Shown here: positions 6,116-64,000 of the stretch, one piece after another | Position numbering within the stretch: the stretch's first letter is position 1 | Layout: every line of letters starts with the position of its first letter | DNA from: Podarcis vaucheri | Taxonomy: Eukaryota | DNA: 64,000 bases | NCBI GenBank assembly: GCA_965113315.1 | Contig: OZ220369.1 | Reading direction: 5' to 3' (one strand) | Notes under the pieces: model-generated | What the model saw: the letters and a program-made list of their open reading frames with translations, nothing else | Told to the model about the DNA's origin: nothing | Database searches by the model: none | Translations under genes and position numbers: made by a program

Positions 6116-6325
6116 ATGACTTCCTCTGAACAGAAGCAAAAGGAAATAGAGTCTGAAAGAGTCGCTGGAAATACAAGAATTGTGGAAACAGAATTGCGCT
6201 GCACCTACCCAAATGAGAGGCGGGAGAGGAATCAGATTTACACCCTTCTAAGCATCAGTAACAGCATAAATGAACAAGAGGAAAGGTCCTTGGATTGTAC
6301 TAATGGAACAGGATGGGAGGAAGCT
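6116..6325 (+). CDS. C16orf46: C16orf46-like protein, coding exon 1 (CDS join 6116-6325, 11896-13050; 454 aa)
   Basis: Acceptor CAG at 6079, ATG at 6116, 70 codons ending GTGWEEA|GTGAGT. Joined to the next exon it gives GTGWEEAVQGWG, the conserved C16orf46 motif. Synteny next to ATMIN. Confidence 0.88.
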
Positions 6326-7309
6326 GTGAGTAAGAATTTTATGTTGTGAACATTTATACTCTCAGTCACCAATTATCCATTAAAAAGAATCTGCCATAAT
6401 ATAGTGTAGTTTATAAATGGGCACCACTTGTCTCCTAGGGGCTGGTTCAAATGTAGTATAAGTTGAAGCATCTTGTGTTCAAATGTGCATTCTGATGAAT
6501 ATAAGAATTATATCCTTGGTTTCAAATCCATCAGGTGATACCGTTGCAGAAGTCCATTTAGTTATAGAGGTCTCTCTTGCTGAATCTTTTCAATATAAAT
6601 GTTGCAGCTGTGGATGAATGCACCTTCCCTCACCTTAAGTTGCAATACTACCTATAGCCCTGCCTAGACAGAGTTAGCTTTGCCTTGTCCATACATGCTG
6701 TGGAAAATCCAAGTCCGACTACTCTAGTGGACTTGGAGAGGCCTTTGGAAACTATTTGTTATCTTCAATTACTTCAGAATATGGCAACTAAACTGTTGAC
6801 TGGAACAAGCCACTTGGAATGTAGCCTGCCAATTTTCTGTGGCTTCTAATTTGATTCCAAGGATTTTCCAAGATACTGGTTGTGACAGGTTTTAACATAT
6901 AAAATCTCATATGGCTTCGGACCAGAGTATCTGAAGGCTTGACTGCTCCTATATGAACCTGCTTGATTTTTAAGACATTCATCAGAGGCCTTGCTTTGGG
7001 TGCTTCCACTTTCAGATGGAAAGTGGGTGGCAATCAGATAGTAGTATCCTGGTTTTGGAAGATTTTCTCCAGGGACAAATTGACTGGCACGTACTCTTAG
7101 CCTTTAGAATGAGGTTGTATTCTCCTGTATTCAACTGTATTCTCCTGAATTTTTAATTAATTGTTTTAACATTTCCTTTGCTGCTGAGTACGTTTGTTGA
7201 CATTCTTGCGGTTTGTATTGTTTCTGTACTGTAGTTCTTAAACTTTCTTAGCTGCTTAGAAAGTTTATATACTCAGATGTGGGAGAAAATTATTTTAAAG
7301 AAAATATTT

Positions 7310-7440
7310 AAAAACAAAACTCTTGTGATACATCCATTTAACGTGATAAAAACATTTAGGAGATAGACCGAGCTTTAATCCATAAAAACCTATGCCATGA
7401 TAAACGTGTTAATCTTTAAGGAATGGCAAGAATCTTGTTG
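7310..7440. mobile_element. degenerate Penelope-like terminal remnant
   Basis: CCATAAAAACCTATGCCATGATAAACGTGTTAATCTTTAAGG resembles a decayed version of the CACGAAAGCTTAT...GTCTTTAAGGTGC terminus at 58258-58305. Confidence 0.4.
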
Positions 7441-7628
7441 ATCTATTTACAAAGGAATTAATAAAAATAAATTATAGGTATTAATCATTTCACCCTGTCC
7501 AGACTAAAGTCAGTGGTGTTGGGTTCCTAAATTTACATAAAATATAATCCTTAAATTAGACAATGCTTTTGATGAAATTATTATAATTATAGTATTTGTG
7601 ATTTGGTTCAGGTTAGTATATGAAGCCT

Positions 7629-7981
7629 GGGACATAGGTGGCACTGTGCGTTAAACCACAGAGCCTAGGGCTTGCCGATCGAAAGGTTGGCAGTTCGAAT
7701 CCCTGTGATGGGGTGAGCTCCCGTTGCTTGGTCCCTGCTCCTGTCAACCTAGCAGTTGGAAAGCACGAAGTGCAAGTAGATAAATAGGTACCACTCCAGC
7801 GGGAAGGTAAATGGTGTTTCCATGAGCTGCTCTGGTTCACCAGAAGTGGCTTAGTCATTCTGGCCACATGATCCGGAAGCTGTACGCCGGCTCCCTTGGC
7901 CAATAAAGCGAGATGAGCGCCACAACCCCAGAGTTGGCCACGACTGGACCTAATGGTCAGGGTTCCCTTTACCCCTTTACC
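7629..7981 (+). mobile_element. Sauria SINE, near full length
   Basis: GGGACATAGGTGGCACTGTG head, GTTCGAATCC B box, AGATAAATAGGTACC core, ACC(C)TTT tail; TSD TTAGTATATG(A/T)AGC at 7613 and 7982. Confidence 0.9.
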
Positions 7982-8984
7982 TTAGTATATGTAGCAATAC
8001 TTTAATTCTTTGCTCAGGGTACTCTACACTTTCCCATTATATGTCATTTTAAAGATGTGCAGCTGGCGCTATGCATGGAAATAAGTCAGCCTGCATTTAC
8101 AGGGGCTTATGCCCAAGTAAGTCTTCATATGACTGCAGTTAATTGTGTAATTACTTTTACAGTTTTCTTGTATTTTGGATTGTGAAGCAAATGTCAAAGC
8201 TTTTCTTCCTACTGCCATGCTATTGTTACTCTATTTTTAGGCTCATGTTTACTACATTTTTTTGAGCTCTGCTTTGTGTCCTGATATCTGTATCTAATTA
8301 AGAAGCCCTGCGGTTATGTCCACATGGTACTTATTTTTAGGGCTGCAGTCCTGCCAGTGGCTTCATCCAGAGTCCATCCTTTCCTTGTATACATGCTTTG
8401 CATTTCCTAGCTTATAACACCTTGCAAGTGTTGGGGGAAGAGAATGACCAGCAAGGTCTAGTGATGCTTTCTTGTGAGAGGGAGCAATCCGAGCCACCTT
8501 GAAGGAAGCAGATATGTACCTTCTCTTAACCTGCAGACTGTTCCATCTATTAGTTGCTAATTTCTCATTTGTGAATAAAAGCTACCCAGTAGGTAATTAT
8601 CACAACCCTGATTGCAATCCTGCTATTTTTCCTAAATTTCTCAGCAGGTTTTGTTACCATCAGTTATGATATTATTCTGGTGTATATTTCCAGGGACATT
8701 GTGCTTCAGTTCCTATGTGGAGAGCCATTTCAGAATGTGGTGCTGAGAGATCATCACTATTGTATTATGCAGGGATTTATTTTGTCTCTTATGCTGTTTA
8801 GAATCTCTTCTGTATGAAAATCCTGAGGTCCTTTGGGATCCTGGAGTAAGGTGCCATCCGTATGCTGCTGACATTTTCTTGTAAAATTCAGAAGTGGTGG
8901 TGGATAAGATGAACTGATGTCTGAAATGAGTAATAATAATAATAATAAATTTATTATTTATACCCTGTCCATCTGGCTGGGTTG

Positions 8985-9660
8985 CATGAACTGGATGCAT
9001 GCTAACTAACTGAAGCTCAATCCAGACAAGATGGAGGTACTGATTATAATTGGTTTATAAGTGGTTTAGCCTGATACGTTGAGTCTATTTTGGGTGGTTT
9101 TGCATTTCCTTGAAGAATTAGGTGCAGAGCTTGGAGATTTGTTTAGATCTATTCTTATATCTGGATCCCCAAGTGAGATGTTGCATGAAGCACTTTCTGC
9201 CAGTTTCAGCTGCTATGCCAGTTTTCACCCCTCCTCTTGATGACTCTCTTATGTTAAGCTAATGCAGCGTCTTCATAGAATCATAGAATTGTAGTGTTGG
9301 AAGGGACCCTGAGGATCATCTAGTCCAACCCCTTACAAAGCAGGAATATGCAGCTGTCCCATAAGGAGATCGAACCTGCAACCTTGGCATTATCATGCTC
9401 TAATCAACTGACCTATCCAGACTCAGATGGAAGGGGATGCCTTAGAAGACTACTGAGAAGCCACAACTAGCCCATAATATGTTTGGTCGAATGGAACGCA
9501 TTACACAAGTGCATAAACATATTCAGTGGTTAGATGTCTATTTCCAAATACAATTCATAGTGCTGTTGTTAACCTTTAAAGCTGTGTAGCTCAGGTTGCA
9601 GATATCTGCAGGACCGCTGCCTGAATGCTGAGATTCTCTTCAAAGGCCCTTCTGTGGGTG
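8985..9660 (+). mobile_element. decayed L2-like LINE RT-region fragment
   Basis: ACTGAAGCTCAATCCAGACAAGATGGAGGTACT (LKLNPDK.E.L-like) plus further degenerate L2 3' sequence; interrupted by a SINE. Confidence 0.6.
9274..9420 (-). mobile_element. tRNA-derived SINE with CR1-type tail
   Basis: Reversed (ATTCTATG)n tail CATAGAATCATAGAAT, then TTGGAAGGGACC...ATCTAGTCCAACCCC and a reversed tRNA-like head GATCGAACC. Confidence 0.7.
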
Positions 9661-10864
9661 TACTTTGCCTGTTTTATATCCTACTTTTTGAGGCAAAAGA
9701 CATTTTTAAAGCAGCTTACAATGTAGCAGAGCAAGTATAACAATTTCAAAACAATAAAAATTCAGTTCTATTAACTAAGATTCTAGTTAGGAGATAATGC
9801 ATCCTGATTCAGAGAAAAAAATTGGACTGGATCATCTTTGAAGGAGTTTGCCATAGTGTGGTCTGGTTTTGTCATAATCAGGAATGTGACAGTAGGCTAC
9901 TATGCAATGGTTGTCTTTCATGGGCATGAGGATATAGTTTACGTTACTCCAGTGGACCAGGAATTATTGACCAAACAGCAAAGCTGTCCTTGAAGAACAC
10001 TTTCACATAGTCAGGAGTGCATGATCCAACTTTCCATCTTGTATTCAAACTTGGGCTCATAACAGGCACCACTGGAGAAGTTACTGTGGAAGGCATTTAT
10101 GCTGACAGACTAGTAGGTGGCAGCTTTCAGAACCATAACTGTTCCCAGAAGCAAAGTTAACATAACCTAAGGGTTTGCTTACAAGAGCTCAGCCTGGCTG
10201 CTGTGATGGTACCTATTTTGGCTTTTGTATGGTACATAGGACTCCATGCTAGCAATGCCACCATGCTTCAGTGTTTTGCCTGGCACGGATTATTCAGACT
10301 TTTTTTGCTTTGGGTGAAGTTCTTTCTATTTATGACTGTCTTTACAGATAGACCAATCAGATTTCTGGACACCAAGTACAGGGCCTTTTCAGTGATAGTC
10401 CTGCATCTTTGGAAGTCCCTCCCATAAGAACCTCCTGGCCTCCTGCTTCAGAGTTTTCAGAGGGCCTTAAAGAGTTTTTGTTGTTGTTGTGTGCAACTTT
10501 TTGGGGATGGTGTTGCTGGCTTTTATTTGTTTCATGTGCTCTATTCTGTTGTTTATATTAATTGTGGTGTGGTTTTAGGATATTGGTTTAAATGTGATGG
10601 TACACTGCCTTAGGACGACTTGTCCTTAAAACTGAATTGAAAATAACTTGTGAGTTTACTGCAAGGTGATCTGAGAACTTCATGGTAGATATAATATTCA
10701 CTATTTTTAAAAAAAACCCCTGAAAGGATTGATCAGAACACTTGTTGTGCCAGGGTGAGATTACGCAGCCTTCACAGCTGACTTCCTACTACTGGCAATG
10801 GGGATGTTCTGGAGAAAAGCAACTTGTGTTTTCTAGAGGTACAGCACCTCCAGTTGTGCACTGA

Positions 10865-10903
10865 AGTACAGTACAGTACAGTACAGTACAGTACAGTACA
10901 GTA
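10865..10903. repeat. (AGTAC)n microsatellite
   Basis: About 8 tandem pentamers. Confidence 0.95.
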
Positions 10904-11895
10904 TAGTGTGTCTATGGAGCACTGAAGTACAGATAATTGCTTTAGCCCATTGTCTGCTTTTTTAAAAAGCAAGTCTCGTCCTTTCTTCTATAAAATATTT
11001 TATACTTTCTATTACTTAAAAGAAAATTCAGTACTGAGGCTAGAATCCCATTGTCCCTAGGAGGGTGTGCCAGGGGGCCACTGGATGTTTCAAATCTCCA
11101 AGTTGAGGGCGGAGAACCTCATAAGGCCTCTTCCAGCCACTATGGAAGTCACTGTGGCCATTTGTCTTACCAATGTCAGAGTTCAAATGTTGGTTGGAGC
11201 AAAGAAAGGGGTTGGTTTGGATCTAAATCCTTTCCATATCCCTGACTCCACCCCTGCCCAATAAATAAATTGAGATAAATAAATGTCAGCCTTGGAACTG
11301 ACATATGTATTTTCCTTTCTACTGGAAACATTCGGAAAGAAATAATAAAAACTTAGAAGACAAGCACTTAGAAAGGACAAATAAAAAAGAGCACCACACT
11401 TTCCACCTTTTTGTTTTGCTACCATGTGCCCAGTAAAATGTCTTTGAGTTATTCAAACCCTCTGCCTTCTGCTGTCCCATTGGTAGGAATGCTGTGTTAG
11501 TGAAGAGCTCTAAAGAAAGCATTAAGAACATGAATAATAGCTTTTGGTCCTCCCATTTGAGACTAAAAATTAGCCATAATATGATATGCACAGCTTTGTT
11601 ATTTAAGTAGACTGGTATGAAACAAAAGTCGGGAGTTGACTTGTGCTGGACCTTCTTGTTTAGTACTAAACTATGACTCATTTAAGGTCTGCTCAACAGT
11701 CTTATCTGACTTTCTTGATAATGGGGCATTATTTTAAAACGGTCTAGGAACCTCATATCAATTACACTTTTTTTGAGCAGATAATATCTTTTCCTGCATA
11801 TTGGTCCACAGTTAAAATTAGCAAGAGATTACCAGTAAATCTAGTTGCTCTGCTGCTTAAAATACTAACTTATATTCACATCATTTTGCTCTCAG

Positions 11896-13050
11896 GTCCA
11901 AGGCTGGGGCAAAACAGCCCCATTTGCTTATCTTCAGCTACAGAAGAAAGCTAGAAAAGCAAAGACAAGTGAGTCTGTCAGTGGATGCCAGTCTGTCAGT
12001 GGATGCCTTTACTGCTTAGATCTGAATCAAGTTATTGACAAAAGTTTGGAACAAGACCCCAAGGGTACAGAACCATTGAAAACTGATTTCAAATTAAGTA
12101 CATGTGCTGCCACAGATCGTATTCCAGAAAAACAACAGACTCTGCTTTTACAGAGTGCAACCATAGACTCTTCTGCAACAGAAGACTCTAAAAAGGAAAA
12201 TTGTTATGGCAAAATATATTCTGGTCACACATCCCAAGGAGAAAAGAAAAAAGTGTCCTTAAAGGATGCTCAAGCTACTTTAAGTGAAAGGAGATTTTTT
12301 CTGATGAAAGAGAGTCCTCTCTTCCAAGGAGAAAAGAGAACAGTGCCAATAAAGGAGTATAGTATACTGACTACAGGAAAACCCAAAACTCTAGAAACTG
12401 TGAAATACAAAGACACAAAAGGCTACGAGCCTCCCATATGTAATCATGTTGGCACTGAAACTGCTACTGTTAAGCCATCATTAGTACTACCACCTCTGAA
12501 AGATGCAACTCTCAAAACCACCCTGGATCCTTCAGCAAAGAAAAGCAAGACTGTTACTTCCCAGGCAAGTGAAAAATCATTCCATGCTGTTTCTGAGACA
12601 AGTTGCTATGGTCAGGTTTTTAAAACCAAAGAGCAAAAGAGTGAAAAAAGAATAGACACAATGTGTAATGCAGTGAAGGAGCAAATAAAAATGCACGAAA
12701 TAGCCTCTTTTGACTCAAGGCTTTCCAAGACTTCATTCATCTCAAGAAACCCAGATCGTTGCTACTGGCATTGTGCATTTGCACCAGATACAAAAATGGC
12801 AACCATGTCTAATTCAATTGCACTGCGAAGACACAATCATCTCAACAGCATGCATTTACTGCATACAAAAGGAGCGCGAATCAACAAAGTTAATGAGATG
12901 CAAGACCCTTGCACCAGAAGCAGGAGTCACACTGGAACCAAACAAGGAAATGAGTCAAAAACACAGGAGATCCCTCTGCTTTCTGGACTATTCCCTTCCT
13001 TAACGGTCAGCCGTGTTGCAATAGCTGCATTGCCCTTTAGGCTGACCTGA
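11896..13050 (+). CDS. C16orf46: C16orf46-like protein, coding exon 2 (terminal)
   Basis: Acceptor TTTTGCTCTCAG at 11895, phase 0. Reads VQGWGKTAPF..., FQGEKRTVPIKEY, LVLPPLK and C-terminal FPSLTVSRV, matching recalled C16orf46 motifs. TGA ends at 13050. Confidence 0.9.
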   Translation, partial: VQGWGKTAPFAYLQLQKKARKAKTSESVSGCQSVSGCLYCLDLNQVIDKSLEQDPKGTEPLKTDFKLSTCAATDRIPEKQQTLLLQSATIDSSATEDSKKENCYGKIYSGHTSQGEKKKVSLKDAQATLSERRFFLMKESPLFQGEKRTVPIKEYSILTTGKPKTLETVKYKDTKGYEPPICNHVGTETATVKPSLVLPPLKDATLKTTLDPSAKKSKTVTSQASEKSFHAVSETSCYGQVFKTKEQKSEKRIDTMCNAVKEQIKMHEIASFDSRLSKTSFISRNPDRCYWHCAFAPDTKMATMSNSIALRRHNHLNSMHLLHTKGARINKVNEMQDPCTRSRSHTGTKQGNESKTQEIPLLSGLFPSLTVSRVAIAALPFRLT

Positions 13051-14123
13051 CTTTTTAAATTGTAATTTCTTGTTGGGCTATTCATGGATTTGTTTGGAGC
13101 ACTCTGTATAATGAGAAAAAATACTGAAAAGTCATTGTAAAGCAGACTGGGCAGATTTGTTAATTTGCATAGGTGCTATTTTGAATAGAGTTGACTGCCA
13201 CTCATTTCTGTACAAAATTAAAATACCAATTGATTACCTCTTACAATAGGATAATGGTTTCAGTAGATCCTTAAATATGTTTAGTTGAACTAATAGAGTC
13301 TGCAGTGTAGACTCAGGCTCTCAGAGATGAGCCTTAATGTGCATTGCCTGGATGATGCCCCCAGTTTGACAAAAACTTTTTGTCTTTAAAAGTACACCTA
13401 GCTAGTTCTTATTTAGAAAATTGGGCATAGCGTTTCAGTACTTCCAATCCCCACTGTATGTATGGTAAATGCAAGCTACTTTGGTCTGTTTTGTTCTTAT
13501 TAGTCCTTTTGCTTGGGAAGACCACTGCAGAAGCACCATGACCTGTGTAGTTTGTCTTCTCAAGGAATACTTGAACTACTGCACCAAACTCAGAATAGAT
13601 GGGCAAGGGATCAGATTTTGCCTAAATTAAGCCCGTACAATTTGGAAGTCATCGAGCCATACATAGCCACAATGCCTGTTTTTGCTCTCTGTCAAGGATG
13701 GCAATAGAAGGCTGTCAAATATCTGTCAGGCCAGACTAAGTTGCTCATGAGCTATATTTATCTCAATGAGTTGTACAGTTGTACAGGCCTAGACCAAGTG
13801 CTTCACCATATGGAATCTAGAAAAGTACCAAAAATTGTCTGCGTAGTCTCTGCCACAATGATGTACTATTTTCAAGCGCCCTCCAATTTGTGCAAAGCCT
13901 TAGCTGTTTTTAGATGTTGTAAAAAGTTTATTTTTAAAGTTTTCTTTTATGTTTAATGTTCAAACAATGTGTAGATAAGACTAAGGAAGCAAAGTTAATA
14001 TTTAGTTATATTTGTGTGTGTAGAATTGACTGTATATACTTCTTGATTTGTTTATGTCAGCTAGGACTTGTCCCCCTCTGCAAAATTAGGTAACTCACAT
14101 TGCTTTATAATCTAGATAGCTTC

Positions 14124-14129
14124 AATAAA
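14124..14129 (+). terminator. candidate poly(A) signal of the C16orf46-like gene
   Basis: AATAAA ~1.07 kb after the stop codon, at the end of an AT-rich UTR-like tract. Confidence 0.55.
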
Positions 14130-16836
14130 ATACTTTTCTGTATGCACAGTGACAGCATGTTCCTCAGTATTTCAATCCAAGAGATTTTCCTGTCAACATC
14201 TGCCATAATTATCCTACACCTTATCTGATGCATTTGGAGTAGCAGGAAGGTAATGACATTTCTGGATATCCAATTGCAAGAGTCCCAATGTCACTCACCC
14301 ATGATTCATGGAATCCACTTATATTTGATCAACTGTACAGAAACTTGTTCAAGTAGTTTTATTATAAAATCTTGCCAAATTCTTTTTAGTTTCAAACAAA
14401 CAAGTTTGCACATAAACTGATCGTAGTCCTTGAACTAAATATTTTGAGTTCTTATGCAAAAAAAATCTGAGAGCTGAGTGGCCTTTTCCTTTTGGTTTTG
14501 GTGATGGTAGCAAGGGCTCTCACCAGGAATTCATGTGCATAAACCTCCTGCAAGAACACAGTAGGCTAGTTGAAAAAATGAACTTTTTTGACAAGCAGCT
14601 TGCTTTCTTGTTCTTAAAACAGGCATGAAATTATTTAATGCAAAAGTGTTCAATAGCATGACCATTTTTTCAGGATTCATCAGTGCCTACAAAGAAAGGA
14701 TTAAAACAGTGACTGACAGAAATGTTGTAACAAACATGCAATATCTTTAAGAAACCACACCTGTTTCTACAAGTGTGGGGCAAAGATTTTTGGGGTGAAC
14801 CACCAATTAAATGGTGTGAATTCCTCACCCCCCCCCATTATAGGAGACAAAATTGCTCGAACCATTATAAACTGTTTATTTGAATTGCCTTTTCTTGGAT
14901 TGGCTGCTAGACTTAACCCTTCCTCTTGCTCCTACTACCACTTCTGTAGAAATGCTGGTTTTAGTGAACATTGTTGAAGGGCTTCCTGCTACCCTCATTG
15001 CACATCACATTTACTGCTAAGAATTGTGAAATTCTGTGCTCCAGTTTAAAGCAAAACATGGATAATGGATGGATACAAGCAGTCGTTTACAAAGTGGTTG
15101 CTTAACCGTGCTATAGCTGTAACCACTTGCTGAGTCAGTTACCTGTGTGATCCTGTTAGGCCAAGTGGATGAAAGTTTTACCTCTCATACAAAATACAGA
15201 CAGTTAAATGGTTGTCAGTCTTCACCTATGTAGACTTGTACCTTGTGAAATAATGGCTTTACAGAAAATAACATGTCATACTTAAGGACCCATTAATATG
15301 TGTTTTCATTTTTCAAAATTACAAGCAGAATAAAATGTCAATAAATTTTAATTCTTTGTGAGCATAAATAAACTTGAAGTTTCTTTTCTAATGATTCCAT
15401 TGATGAGTGAACCAAAATAAATAGCAGCTACTTTTCAGTGAATTTAAAATGATTGATCTTGTTACTTACCAGCTAAACCAAGTTAGTGAGCTGAAAAGCC
15501 ATGCTTGATAGTACTTACAAGTCATGCTTCCTGATGCTGCAGTTAGGAAAACTTCAAAAAGCAATTTGGCATCACAATGAACAAAGTATGAATTTTGTAT
15601 TACTTAGTCGAGGGTGTGGTGTGGGGGGGAAGGCTGTGGCCCTCCGGAGACGACTGGACTCGTTCCCCTCCTTGAACACAGTGGGGCCCACTTCTGGGTA
15701 GGTATGTCCAGGGCCAGGCTGCATATTCCACTGATTTCAGTGGGAAAGATTTAAGCATGTTCATAATGCTAACTGAAAATAGGTAGGGACTTTAAAAGTA
15801 TCTTAGCGTTGGTTGGGTCATGCCCTTTGTTTTAACTCCCCTTTTCTGCCCTGCACAAAGAGAACAGATGCCACAATCCAATACTCAAGGGTGTATGCTC
15901 CAAAATAAGTGTATATAGGATTACATACACAAGTAAATGTGTGTAGCATTACACAAGTGTGTATTGCTAACTAGCTTTTAAAATAGCATATATATTTAAC
16001 AGTTTTTTTCTTAGTTCTTCTGTGGACTTTGTCAATGATAACAGTGTGGAATTTAGCTGTGATTTCATTCTTTTTTTAAAAATTGTGGTGTTTTTTTAAA
16101 AAAAATCATACTATTGATTTTCTTTTAAACACTTGAGGGTTGTTGTTTTTTTTAAATCACCATTATATCAAATGTGGAAAAATAGGGGGATAACAGCATG
16201 GATAATGTACATCACAAAGAATGTGAGACTACACCAGAACTTAATGATCATTTAGCTTTAAAAATATAGAGCCTTCTTTAGATACAAATAATCATTTGAT
16301 TCCTCCCCCCCCTGCAAATGCACCCCAAGACCCTCCTGAATTTATATCCATTAAAAAAACCTGACCAGTTCTGTGGACACCCTACTGTGATTCTGTTATA
16401 CCAGAATATTTTTTGGTGATTCTCCCGGGACTCCCATGCCGATGTAGCCTTTAAAAAAGGAGTACACCTGCTTTTACACTTTCGCCACTTTGGCAAGTGG
16501 CACCCAGAGGGCTGACATTGGGTTTTTTTTTATAGGATTTCATTACTAACTTGGTTCAATAAATCATCACCAGCAGGACATATCAAATATAACATTTAGT
16601 GGAAAATTCTCATTTTTCAAATTAAAGTCCTAGAGAGCATGGAAAAGTTACCTAACATGACATTGAAAAGTTTAAGAAGAATTTGGCCAAAATTCACTAC
16701 AAGTTTTGTATAGAGGTTTGGTGAAATTCATTATATTAAGTGTTTTTTGTGAAAGTGAAAGATTCACGTTTTTGGTGTGGCTGCAAGACTCTGAATTTAA
16801 AGGCACCATCTTTTCCCCTCCCTTTTTTCCTTCCAG

Positions 16837-17532
16837 GAACAAGGCTGGGGGAGAGCTACTCCTTTCACATGCTGTAAGATCCAAAAAGAGACCAAGAAAC
16901 CAAGAGTAACCAAAACAGTCTCAAGCATCTCTCACCAGAATATGGTGCCTGCTAATAAGAAAAACATGGCCTGGGTAACACAGTTGGCAAGAGAGAGACA
17001 AAAAATGGACGACAAATTTACTGAAGGAGAACCAGTTTCAAGCAACAAAAAGATGGAAGTTTCGTGCATCAAACCATACAACTATGTCCCAATGATGACA
17101 GCCCATGCCGAGGGAGACAGAAAGAGAGGGAAATTAGACTCTATCCAAACATTCCTAGGTGAAAAAAGGAGCTTGCCAATAAAGGAATATGAAATCAAGT
17201 ACTCACAACGGCAGACAGAACCTGACATCCTGAAATATAATGCAATCGGCCTGCCCAGAGTAATCCACGGTAATCCTCCTAACAGCTTGAGCTGTATAAC
17301 CTTAAATGCATTTTTGGTCTTCAGACCAGACGAAGGCAATGTAATCAATTTGCATCTGGAGCCTCCTTCAAAGCATGAAGCAACAGCAGTCAAGAGAACT
17401 GAGGATGAGGACAGCACGGACGCAGTCTCCTATAGCCACGTAATTAAAAAAGTAAAGCAGAAGAGTGAAAAAAAAGTTGGTATGAATAATACGGTGAAAA
17501 AGCAAATACAAAAATCATGTATCGCCCTTTGA
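16837..17532 (+). CDS. diverged duplicate of the C16orf46 terminal exon (alternative last exon or tandem paralog), 231 codons
   Basis: Strong acceptor CCCTTTTTTCCTTCCAG at 16836. The open frame EQGWGRATPF...FLGEKRSLPIKEY...KQKSEKKVGMNNTVKKQI aligns colinearly with VQGWGKTAPF...FQGEKRTVPIKEY...EQKSEKRIDTMCNAVKEQI of exon 11896-13050. Confidence 0.75.
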   Translation, partial: EQGWGRATPFTCCKIQKETKKPRVTKTVSSISHQNMVPANKKNMAWVTQLARERQKMDDKFTEGEPVSSNKKMEVSCIKPYNYVPMMTAHAEGDRKRGKLDSIQTFLGEKRSLPIKEYEIKYSQRQTEPDILKYNAIGLPRVIHGNPPNSLSCITLNAFLVFRPDEGNVINLHLEPPSKHEATAVKRTEDEDSTDAVSYSHVIKKVKQKSEKKVGMNNTVKKQIQKSCIAL

Positions 17533-17853
17533 CTTGTCCATGGTGCTCAGCTATTTTGTCTCGTCTTCAAAGCTGTTTGACTTTTTCCTTTGTACTGAAT
17601 TAAGATTACATTCAAGCTATCTTCCCTTCCCAATCATTGCTATTCTAAATGCAGTACGAACACCTGCATGGTTTGTGCTGCCCTTGTAAAATTGTGATAG
17701 TAGCAAGGGCAATTACATTAATAATGAGGGAGCTTTAACTCAACAGGACTGATCATCTCAATTAATTGGCAGTGACTAATTTTAAACCAGTGAGGCCAAA
17801 GAGCTGGGACTTAAGGGGTACCCTTGGTTTCTGAGGCTATTTTGGTTCTAGTA

Positions 17854-18109: not shown

Positions 18110-21100
18110 TGGTTCTAGTAGTTTGCTATAATTCAGAATGACTATATATTAAGGTGGTCATTCTTTCTCCCAATATCTGGAGCCCCAAAGCACCATGGGT
18201 GGTTTTTGGTTGGCGCATCTAGCCTTCCCAACTGCCCCTTTCAGTGGTAGCACAAACAGCCAGAGAAGCTCATCCCATTAGGCCCCCTTGTGACCACGGA
18301 AGGATCAAGGTGGCGAAGCACGGGATCCCAGTTACAAAGAGGAGGTGCTGAGGGAGATTTGAAGGCTGTATACAGCAAGCCTTTCATTTACTTTTGAGTG
18401 CACGGATGGGGTTGTGGATGCAGAGGTGGGGGGGCATAGCACAGGTGAGGGAAAAGAAGAGTAGATGGAGAGGGAGGCAAACATAGCAACTAAGTGATAA
18501 AATAATATGATGAACGACAGAGAAACGAACAGAAAAACAGAATGGAAGAGAGAAAGAATCGTTGGTATGAGAGGGTTTGTGTATGTATGTGTTTGAGACT
18601 GGATGGAGGATGGAAGCATGTCTGTTGTGTGTAAGGATGGAAGGGGTTGGCTTATGTGAGGAGGAATGGTTGATGAAATGGGGGAAAGCTGTGAGGAAAA
18701 AGGGGTGGGCTATCCGGTGGCTCCAGCCTTGCCTACTGCCGTTATGCGGCCTCTGACCACCTTTCCCCCACGGAATGCAGCCCCTGCATTCAGAACTGTT
18801 GGCCACCCCATATTAAACCATAGCCACGCTTGCATAGCCCTGGGAAAAGAATGCCAGCATGGCCACATCTCCTGCAGTCACGCCCCATCATTTGCAAACC
18901 CCTTGCATCAGGGCAAAACCATACCCTTTATCACTACTTTGGTTTTAAGGCAAGGAATAAAAAAGAAATGCTATCTCCAGCCACACAGCCAAAGGCTATT
19001 GCACTACAGCAATTTGACAGGGGCTAGTGAAAAGTGTGACATTGCGTTTCTATTTCACAGTATAATCCACTTTCTAGACCCAACTATTTCTTTTCAATAG
19101 AGGAATGAAATGGCAAAGTGTTCAAGTAACCATTTAGTGTAAAACAAGAGGCAGGGGAGGAAAACTGGTGAGTTAAGGCAGAAAGACATTTATTTGTTCA
19201 TCTTTGTGACATAAATGTGTTTCATTATATATACAGGTAGGCCCTTAACCTGAACAGTTTTATTCAAGACAGAGTTCATTTATTTAAAGCTCACAGTATT
19301 TGCAATTCTATGCATGCAGTTGTGTGTGCAAACACCTAATGGACAGAGAAGAGTCAGTTCTACCATTTTACTGTCTGAAAGCAGAGGAAACTGTGCACTT
19401 GCATGTTGGTCTAAATTGTCATTGCATGCACGTTTAAGAGTAATGTGCTCTTTGGCATTTCATCTTGATTAGCTGCCTGAAGAGAATACGTATGCATCGG
19501 AGGAGAAAAAGGAGGCTTGTGGCTCCATAAAGAATAACAGATTTAATTGTGGTAGATACATTTGATCTTTAACAAAGTGAGCACAAATGAGAGGGAGGAA
19601 ACCCCTAGAAAAAGAGGACTACTCTGTCCCTAAACATGGCAGAAAGGAGGGTGTAGTAAAAATTGCAGCTGCAAACGAGAATGAGGTTTTCTTTCACTTA
19701 CCCATATCCAGCCAGATATTAAAACTGTAATCATGACAACCTCCTCTTAAAGGCAACAGGCCACAGTTTCATTTTTATTCAGGATCCCTCCAGCCCATCT
19801 GCTCCTTACCCCCTCAGTGATGAAATGGAAGTCATTCTCTTGAGGCTAGAAAACAGCAGCACTGTATTGTTTCCTTGCAAAAACTCCATAAAGTGCAAGA
19901 ATTGGATACAGAAAATGTTCAATGATATACATGATCGATGCTGGAATTTAATATGGTGTCATTCAGATTTTTTATCTACATGCCAAGGTTCTGATACAAC
20001 CCTTGTCCCTTTAATAGATAAACTGTGTGTATTGACTCATTTTCACATTTCAGGCAACCTGCAGTGGACAAAACCCCTTAGTTCACTGGTATTGTTCAAT
20101 GACATGGTATTGCTTCTGACATGGTATACCCATGCTTAGGCTGCAGGTGGGGGCTCACATTATTGAATGCTCCTCCATACAAAAGGATTCCCTCTTATTT
20201 TCTGTATGAAAAACTAGGTATTAGGGAATTTTTTAAAAAATGCAGGGGGGTTGAGGTGTAATCAAGCATACGTGTTCCCATCTGCAGCCCATACACAGCC
20301 TAGACACGTTTATTCACAGTGCAATCCTACATTTAGTCAGAAACAAGTCCCCAACCTCCAAAAACCCAAACCCCCATAAAGCATGCAGAGGCTCACAGAG
20401 TTTCATTTCCAGTGTCTGTGTACGCCACCTCAATCTGCAGCCAGACGTGAAGCATGCGTGTGTATGTATGCACACCTAGAATTTTTCTTGAAAATTAGCA
20501 AGCATAATGAAATGAAATACCATACTTTGATCCAGCAAGAGTAAGACATCACACTAAGTTCTGCAACTCAGGTTTTTTGTTTTCAAGTTTAGAAATATCC
20601 ATTAAGCAGACTAGTGCTATTTCATGGTGCAAAATGATATTAAAGAATGTTCCTTTAAAAGTTAATATAAGCTTTGCAAACAATTAAGAGGTGGTTGTCT
20701 ATTTCCTGCATGCTCATCCTCTTTTACTCTTTCATCCATCTTGAACCAGCTACAATGACAGGCAAATATCCTGGGTGCATCTACTGCCACAGGTAATCTC
20801 TAACGCTGCCTTTGCCAACCTGGCTGTGTTGGCTAGGGCTTTTGGGAACATCTGGAAGTTACCAGGTTGGCAAAGGCTACTGTACAGTGATTGTGAACGA
20901 GTTATTTTATTTTCTAAAATACTAAACAACTCACCCAGTACAGTGAGTGTTAGGCCGTTTTCAGATGCTCAAAAAAGACAACTAAGATATCCCTCTAGAA
21001 GCAGGCATGAGAAAGGAAGCAACCAAACCCTGGGAGGAACAGCTTGCCAAAGTTTCTTGTTGCTTGCCTGAGATGGGTAGTAACTTGTAGTACTTGCCTT

Positions 21101-62834: not shown

Positions 62835-64000
62835 AATGGCTGCGATGTTGGCAACTGTTCAGTGCACTTTAATTATTTGGTTGAGACTTAACATTTTTTA
62901 AAGAGCCCTGCTAGATCAAGCTATTTATTCCATCATCCTCTATCCTGCAGTGGCCAACCAGATGTCTGTAGGAAACCCACAAATAGGATGCCAAGACAAT
63001 AACTCTGTCCTACTCATTCTCCCCAACAGTAGGTATTTAGAGACATGCTGCTTTGAACCTTGAGGGTAGCATGTGGCCATCCTGACTAGAAGCCATTGAT
63101 AGCCTTGGTGGAGTATAATCACTTCTCGAGTTTTTCTGCGGAGAGGAATGATAGCTCCGTGGGTGAGTTCATGATTTGCATGTGGAAGGTCCCAGGTTCA
63201 GTCCCTGGTATCTCATATTAAAAGGATCTCTTCGGAGCAAGGCTGGGAAGAGCTTTTCCCTGAGACTTTTGGAGGCTGCTTTGAAAAAGAAAGCAAGAAA
63301 GCAGAGACTAGGGAAGCGGAATCTTGCAGCCAGTACAACATAGTGCATTTCTTTGCTGGAGTATACACATGGCCTTGGTTTTAACTGATATGTTAGGAGC
63401 TTCAGATCTCACTCCATTTCCTTTTGGAAATAAAAGCTCTTAGAGAAATGCCTGATTACCTGTAAATTGCTTTCAAAAAATATCAAGTCAGATGGTCAGA
63501 GGCATAAAGAACCATCCTATTTGCTCAGCACACCTGTCAAAACACGACCCTGAAACATCATGTGTGCAACCCCAGCAGGAGGTGCAAACAAACAGCTGAG
63601 TGCATTAATGCTCCTGTGTTTGGTGGGAAAAGAACTTAACTCTGATGATACTGGATTGGGGGCGGTGGATGACCAGCAAAAAAGTATTTGATGGGCTCTG
63701 AAGTCACACACTTTTTAATAGTGCTTAGTTTATCCACAAGTTAAAAAAGTTAAATAGAAAAGAAAAAGATGAATGGACATATATTAACACAGCATGGCCC
63801 ATTTCACTCAGAGTAGACCCACTGGAATTAATGGACCTAACTTTGTAATTAATTTCAAAAGGGCTGCTCTGACTAAAACTTAGTTGAATACCACCCGTGG
63901 TTAGGGTTCCACTATAATTTCATCTGCCTGCAGGAAACAGTTTGACTTATAAACAGCCTTTATAAACTAGCCTTTTGCTAGACTGATAACTGCTTGACCT

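Follow-up and report, generated by a model that had tools for sequence, protein, structure and literature searches.

C16orf46 of Podarcis vaucheri very probably carries an ancient, alternatively spliced tandem copy of its main coding exon

The stretch of DNA analysed here (the window; 64,000 nucleotides of contig OZ220369.1 from Podarcis vaucheri, containing no N) carries the gene C16orf46 and, 3.8 kb past its stop codon, a further open exon at 16837-17532, called exon B in the following, which is very probably a bona fide C16orf46 coding exon that arose as an ancient tandem exon copy and is alternatively spliced. Exon B is real, expressed at the RNA level, and, judged by protein-level proxies, selectively maintained in squamates; it is also already contained in automatic gene models of related reptiles, and is therefore genuine but fairly ordinary. 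All features described below lie on the plus strand.

Exon B was delimited by homology, RNA contigs, annotated orthologues, the phylogenetic tree, and constraint. Its acceptor, a polypyrimidine tract with AG at 16820-16836 (CCCTTTTTTCCTTCCAG, followed by GAACAA from 16837), was recognized from the sequence and from its DNA likeness to the acceptor of the main coding exon (exon A), and every spliced contig on exon B starts exactly at 16837. Directly behind this acceptor, 231 sense codons run up to a TGA at 17530-17532; the frame is lysine-rich and appears in the ORF listing of the window only from the Met at 16942. The original prediction had described a strong acceptor with 231 open codons at this distance from the C16orf46 stop, only partly visible in the ORF track and entered at the same homologous position and in the same phase (0) as the real exon (EQGWG versus VQGWG), all of which is borne out by the sequence. 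The 3'UTR behind exon B starts at 17533 and is covered up to 17850 by a contig of run X7, which extends from 16837 to beyond 17850; the 3' limit lies beyond this position, and the first poly(A) signals found by the signal scan are at 18812 and 18956.

The remaining exons of the gene were placed upstream. Coding exon 1 (6116-6325; 70 codons, MTSSEQ…GTGWEEA) was identified from its translation and its match to Pfam DUF4529 (profile positions 7-70, E 7.6e-12); it is common to all isoforms and ends in the donor GCT/GTGAGT at 6325/6326. Exon A (11896-13050; 384 codons and a stop at 13048-13050) begins in phase 0 with VQGWGKTAPF, matches DUF4529 with an E-value of 2.7e-27, is covered by an RNA contig, and forms the last exon of a 454-aa form; it is 98-99% identical to the models of Podarcis lilfordi and P. 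raffonei. Within exon A, an internal phase-0 donor (13004-13011; ACG/GTCAGC, cut between 13005 and 13006) is located 45 nt upstream of the stop, so that the A part then ends in …LLSGLFPSLT; it is documented by splice joints of run X1 and by the long reptile models. A cassette exon of 100 nt (14150-14249) between exons A and B was found from X1 joints, its sequence, and its good splice sites. When the cassette is read on from 13005, its first codon is TGA, which gives a 440-aa product ending in …PSLT, turns exon B into 3'UTR, and places the stop 97 nt ahead of the last junction. The internal donor with the 671-aa form that it yields, and the cassette, are additions beyond the original prediction.

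The translations of exons A and B were joined by BLASTP in a single colinear alignment, which has 274 columns, 27% of them identical (E 7e-8). It includes the blocks FLGEKRSLPIKEY/FQGEKRTVPIKEY, ILKY/TVKY, and KQKSEKKVG-MNNTVKKQI/EQKSEKRIDTMCNAVKEQI, and thereby all of the homology blocks that had been quoted as colinear beforehand. The similarity between the two exons is well above chance; exon B matches the first ~270 residues of exon A, about the first two thirds. Exon B alone aligns with positions 72-277 of Pfam DUF4529 (PF15032) at an E-value of 3.2e-5 and 23.6 bits, the curated cut-off being 27, and PF15032 is present in the precomputed annotation of two orthologues composed of exon 1 and exon B (P0001 and P0005). 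Three colinear remnants of similarity are left at the DNA level (11884-11909/16825-16850, 12322-12360/17152-17190, and 12606-12691/17430-17512), of which the first spans the acceptor, with 81% of 26 nt alike. Exon B thus combines colinear DUF4529 motifs with a position 3.8 kb downstream in the C16orf46 locus on the same strand, and, as a tandem exon duplication would leave them, each exon opens with xQGWG in phase 0 behind the AG of a homologous acceptor. No remnant of the missing C-terminal third was found by tblastn downstream of 17532. A weak tblastn match to the start of exon B, at 63235-63345 and translating …SSEQGWEELFPETFGG…, was taken as chance rather than as a further relative, given its E-value of 0.46.

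Evidence for transcription came from public sequencing runs. Exon B was listed in 24 of them, and four (X1, X5, X6, and X7; three studies covering four organisms) were examined over 11860-17850 as assembled contigs; the RNA status of the runs was itself a guess, and their contigs are spliced and therefore derive from RNA (cDNA). In all four, the last 29-30 nt of exon 1 (6296/7-6325) sit directly before 16837; this tail is unique in the window and was matched by the contigs with 0-1 mismatch. The same tail also precedes 11896 in an X1 contig covering 11896-13005. Both junctions that the original prediction had proposed to look for, 6325 to 16837 and 6325 to 11896, were therefore recovered, the former in X1, X5, X6, and X7 and the latter in X1, showing that exons A and B are spliced to a shared upstream exon. 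Three further GT..AG joints, 13005 to 16837, 13005 to 14150, and 14249 to 16837, were detected in X1, while X6 contains an exon 1-exon B contig and no contig at all for exon A. Joining exon 1 to exon B keeps phase 0, rebuilds the GTGWEEA-xQGWG motif, and encodes 301 aa by the window coordinates, from which the lengths of all joined forms were computed; the 301-aa isoform had been anticipated, and it now has contigs of four runs and a 301-aa model of Zootoca vivipara on its side. The A-to-B joint likewise keeps phase 0, and the 70 codons of exon 1, 370 of exon A, and 231 of exon B add up to 671, exactly the length of the P. lilfordi protein. Since the joint 13005 to 16837 carries both copies in one mRNA, as do the 671-aa models, the two exons are not mutually exclusive; their use is alternative, yet non-exclusive.

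Gene models containing exon B, from NCBI and other sources, exist in at least nine squamates and two turtles. The Zootoca vivipara 'C16orf46 homolog isoform X2' (P0001; 301 aa, 94% identical across the full exon B) and the Thamnophis elegans isoform X3 (P0005; 293 aa) consist of exon 1 joined to exon B, and the protein search with exon B also matched one Phrynosoma model and several Logan and ENA ORFs. Longer models of about 650-670 aa are composed of exon 1, exon A up to …LLSGLFPSLT, and exon B; they were found among squamates in P. lilfordi, Hemicordylus capensis (X2), Sceloporus undulatus, Crotalus horridus, Notechis scutatus, and Anolis carolinensis (X2), and among turtles in Natator depressus and Pelodiscus sinensis (X1). 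The P. lilfordi protein PODLI_1B026258 (P0010) has 671 aa, an exon B 98% identical to that of the window, and the junction …PSLT/EQGWG…, which is also present in other long models. A different internal donor of exon A is used in Pogona vitticeps X4, and in a Crocodylus porosus model the …PSLT donor recurs, there joined to a different short exon. For P. vaucheri, the protein searches returned no model with exon B, although its close relatives have one. The reptile Gnomon models agree with the window in the exon, in the junctions (…GWEEA/EQGWG… and …PSLT/EQGWG…), and in the lengths of 301 and 671 aa; they are, however, automatic predictions without a published description, to which spliced contigs, the cassette, a dating, and a measure of constraint are added here. 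Our literature search on C16orf46 and DUF4529 yielded no account of how the gene is built or how it evolved. A profile built from the exon B alignment and searched against 1.84 billion representatives returned 11 matches, all of them C16orf46 kin, and the search found no B-type exon in named bird, crocodilian, mammal, or amphibian proteins.

The age of the duplication was estimated from a mammal-rooted IQ-TREE phylogeny of 42 rows and 335 columns, comprising A and B parts cut from the long models, B-only sequences, and A-only proteins of squamates, turtles, crocodilians, birds, and three mammals. All 17 B copies, including those of turtles, form one clade (UFboot 100, SH-aLRT 97) within sauropsids, adjoining a weakly supported sauropsid A clade (84/73). 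Inside the B clade, the turtle copies together with the Logan ORF P0068 form the sister group of the squamate copies (100/100), and the squamate B topology broadly mirrors that of squamate A, with B branches 1.3-2 times as long. A single clade of squamate A and B copies was rejected by the AU test (delta lnL 33.7, p 0.00016), which rules out a squamate-specific duplication; it follows that the exon was duplicated before squamates and turtles separated. With mammals as the root, this date is relative to the squamate-turtle split only, and placing it against the mammal split needs a deeper outgroup. The suggestion that this might be an undescribed lineage-specific arrangement accordingly does not hold, as the exon is modelled in at least nine squamates and two turtles and its origin predates their divergence. 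The B-type ORF P0068 (297 aa, on a contig of 20.9 kb), the one new B-type sequence among the profile matches, retains a C-terminal third with homology to the last part of exon A. The duplication therefore copied the entire exon at the outset, and the copy became shorter in squamates only afterwards. In the tree, P0068 joins the turtle B copies by a long branch, and the branch lengths suggest a non-turtle relative of these copies; an archosaur or some other reptile outside the turtles could be its source.

Conservation of the frame was examined in 14 squamate exon B rows from Lacertidae, Cordylidae, Iguania, and Serpentes, including three Logan sequences and two rows from Podarcis; these lineages are separated by well over 150 My. 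All 14 rows keep an open frame, apart from shifted tails in three, so that stops or frameshifts of a decaying exon were not found in squamates. Conservation is block-wise, and 27 columns, including LPIKEYEI, are invariant in an alignment of nine sequences. Compared with the window, exon B is 64% identical in Hemicordylus (exon A 66-68%), 65% in Sceloporus (61-62%), 61% in Pogona (61-63%), and 52-54% in snakes (58-61%); by these pairwise identities, exon B diverges about as slowly as exon A among squamates. Between the two turtles, B is the faster of the two, with 65% identity versus 78% in A. Because exon B is lysine-rich, neutral substitution soon makes stops: in a simulation with substitutions alone, insertions and deletions being ignored, 154 of 400 frames were still open at 94% identity, three of 400 at 65%, and none of 400 at 52%. 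Block-wise conservation, A-like divergence, and this simulation together support the earlier proposal that the frame has been kept by selection. Phrynosoma, Anolis, and Crotalus have a frame shift that affects their last ~12 residues. In this tail (17487-17545), lacertids, colubrids, and elapids read …KKQIQKSCIAL, and the other three read …KSNTKIMYHPLICP, which corresponds to the +2 frame of the window; a slip in the preceding A-run is the likely cause of the two frames.

Several observations would fit a decaying partial duplicate, a pseudo-exon that is open by chance in Podarcis and spliced as noise. Exon B alone falls just under the Pfam cut-off, its branches are longer than those of A, and two turtles, Mauremys and Dermochelys, have a frame that stops early, at 35 or 17 residues; these are the only truncations observed, and by them exon B seems dispensable in part of the turtle lineage. 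Among the within-Podarcis differences listed, moreover, exon B has at least five (approximate count) non-synonymous against at least one or two synonymous changes, and exon A at least eight of each; the mostly non-synonymous changes in exon B could reflect a recently relaxed constraint. Chance openness, however, is hard to reconcile with a frame kept in every squamate row, with exons A and B having diverged to almost the same extent in the species pairs compared, with the invariant LPIKEYEI within conserved blocks, and with the loss of every simulated neutral frame by the identity reached in snakes. Noise splicing also accords poorly with an exon 1-exon B junction that occurs in each of the four runs and is the sole form seen in X6. 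We therefore regard decay as improbable. Even less probable, in our assessment, is that exon B is kept mainly as a regulatory 3' sequence (an alternative 3'UTR or a decay switch) with coding as a secondary role: the cassette TGA does leave exon B untranslated, but this would not explain an intact lysine-rich frame of 231 codons, amino-acid conservation across squamates, or the phase-0 joints with both exon 1 and exon A.

The original prediction had offered two readings, an alternative last exon and an unannotated tandem paralog, of which the former stands and the latter was rejected. An independent paralog, having a promoter and a first exon to itself, would agree with a separate 202-aa 'hypothetical protein' of Phrynosoma platyrhinos (P0002) on the same contig as the exon A model P0011; that model, however, merely begins at an internal Met. 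Neither in the 3.8 kb between exons A and B nor elsewhere in the window did tblastn find a second copy of exon 1, and every contig reaching 16837 continues to the exon 1 tail, exon A, or the cassette, so that the RNA contigs use the exon 1 of C16orf46 itself. We consider a separate gene highly improbable on these grounds.

According to the preferred reading, which takes exon B for an alternative coding exon of C16orf46, the large coding exon would have been duplicated in tandem, acceptor included, before squamates and turtles diverged, and the copy would afterwards have lost its C-terminal third in the squamate line. Three splice routes lead on from exon 1, and all of them are represented among the spliced RNA contigs. 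Splicing to exon B with exon A skipped would place the B body behind the shared N-terminus instead of the A body (301 aa); splicing to exon B by way of 370 codons of exon A would give two tandem DUF4529 bodies (671 aa); the same route with the cassette would end the protein at 440 aa and leave exon B as 3'UTR. This last form may serve to turn the gene down, in the manner of a nonsense-mediated-decay switch. AlphaFold2, run on shallow alignments, folded neither exon B nor the 671-aa P. lilfordi protein with confidence (pLDDT 41 and 31, respectively), and from these models we infer that the protein may be largely disordered and act via short linear motifs, such as QGWG..PF, GEKR.LPIKEY, and the basic K.KSEKK…VKKQI tail. 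Splicing would then select which motif set, or both, follows the common N-terminus. Exon B keeps the LPIKEY core and has a conserved block of its own, …HGNPP.SL.CITLNALLVFRPDE.GVINLHLEPP, which is absent from exon A. That sauropsid C16orf46 is a gene of two modules in which exon B has become a distinct functional module in squamates, with regulated and perhaps tissue-specific switching among A-only, B-only, and A+B forms, is a tentative idea that we hold to be rather unlikely; if true, it would offer a natural way into what this uncharacterised family of amniote proteins does.

Tandem exon duplication is a known source of alternative or mutually exclusive exons in vertebrate genes. Exon B resembles such cases in lying near its parent in the same gene, in having kept the acceptor, phase 0, and colinear motifs, and in being able to replace exon A behind a shared upstream exon. 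It differs in the considerable length of exons A and B (1155 and 696 nt), in their terminal instead of internal position, in an identity of just 27%, and in that they are not strictly exclusive, the internal donor allowing both in tandem. The mechanism itself is well known, and the locus offers a clean worked case in which it supplies alternative terminal exons. To our knowledge, C16orf46 (DUF4529) has no known function. The mammalian protein (390-411 aa) has a single body, and its layout of an N-terminal exon followed by QGWG, LPIKEY-like, and …PSLTVSR elements is that of lizard exons 1 and A; no second body was present among the mammalian, bird, and crocodilian C16orf46 models returned. The comparison of A and B points to motifs that are indispensable (QGWG..PF, GEKR.LPIKEY, and the basic tail) versus parts that can be swapped. 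Exon B also corrects the annotation of the P. vaucheri genome. As a hint only, human C16orf46 belongs to a lung co-expression module rich in cilium genes (PMC6787516).

Finally, two further observations concern the 3' side of exon A. A P. raffonei model named 'CMC2 isoform X4' (P0018; 293 aa) consists of exon 1 and the first 223 codons of exon A, which would imply a GC donor, CAG/GCAAGT, at 12564/12565 and read-through to the downstream CMC2 gene; no joint at this site was present in the contigs of the four runs (X1, X5, X6, and X7). In X7, one unspliced 3.5-kb contig (11860-15328) runs from before exon A across the internal donor and the cassette and ends close to a cluster of AATAAA signals at 15329-15416, which suggests either a long 3'UTR of the form terminating in exon A or intron retention.
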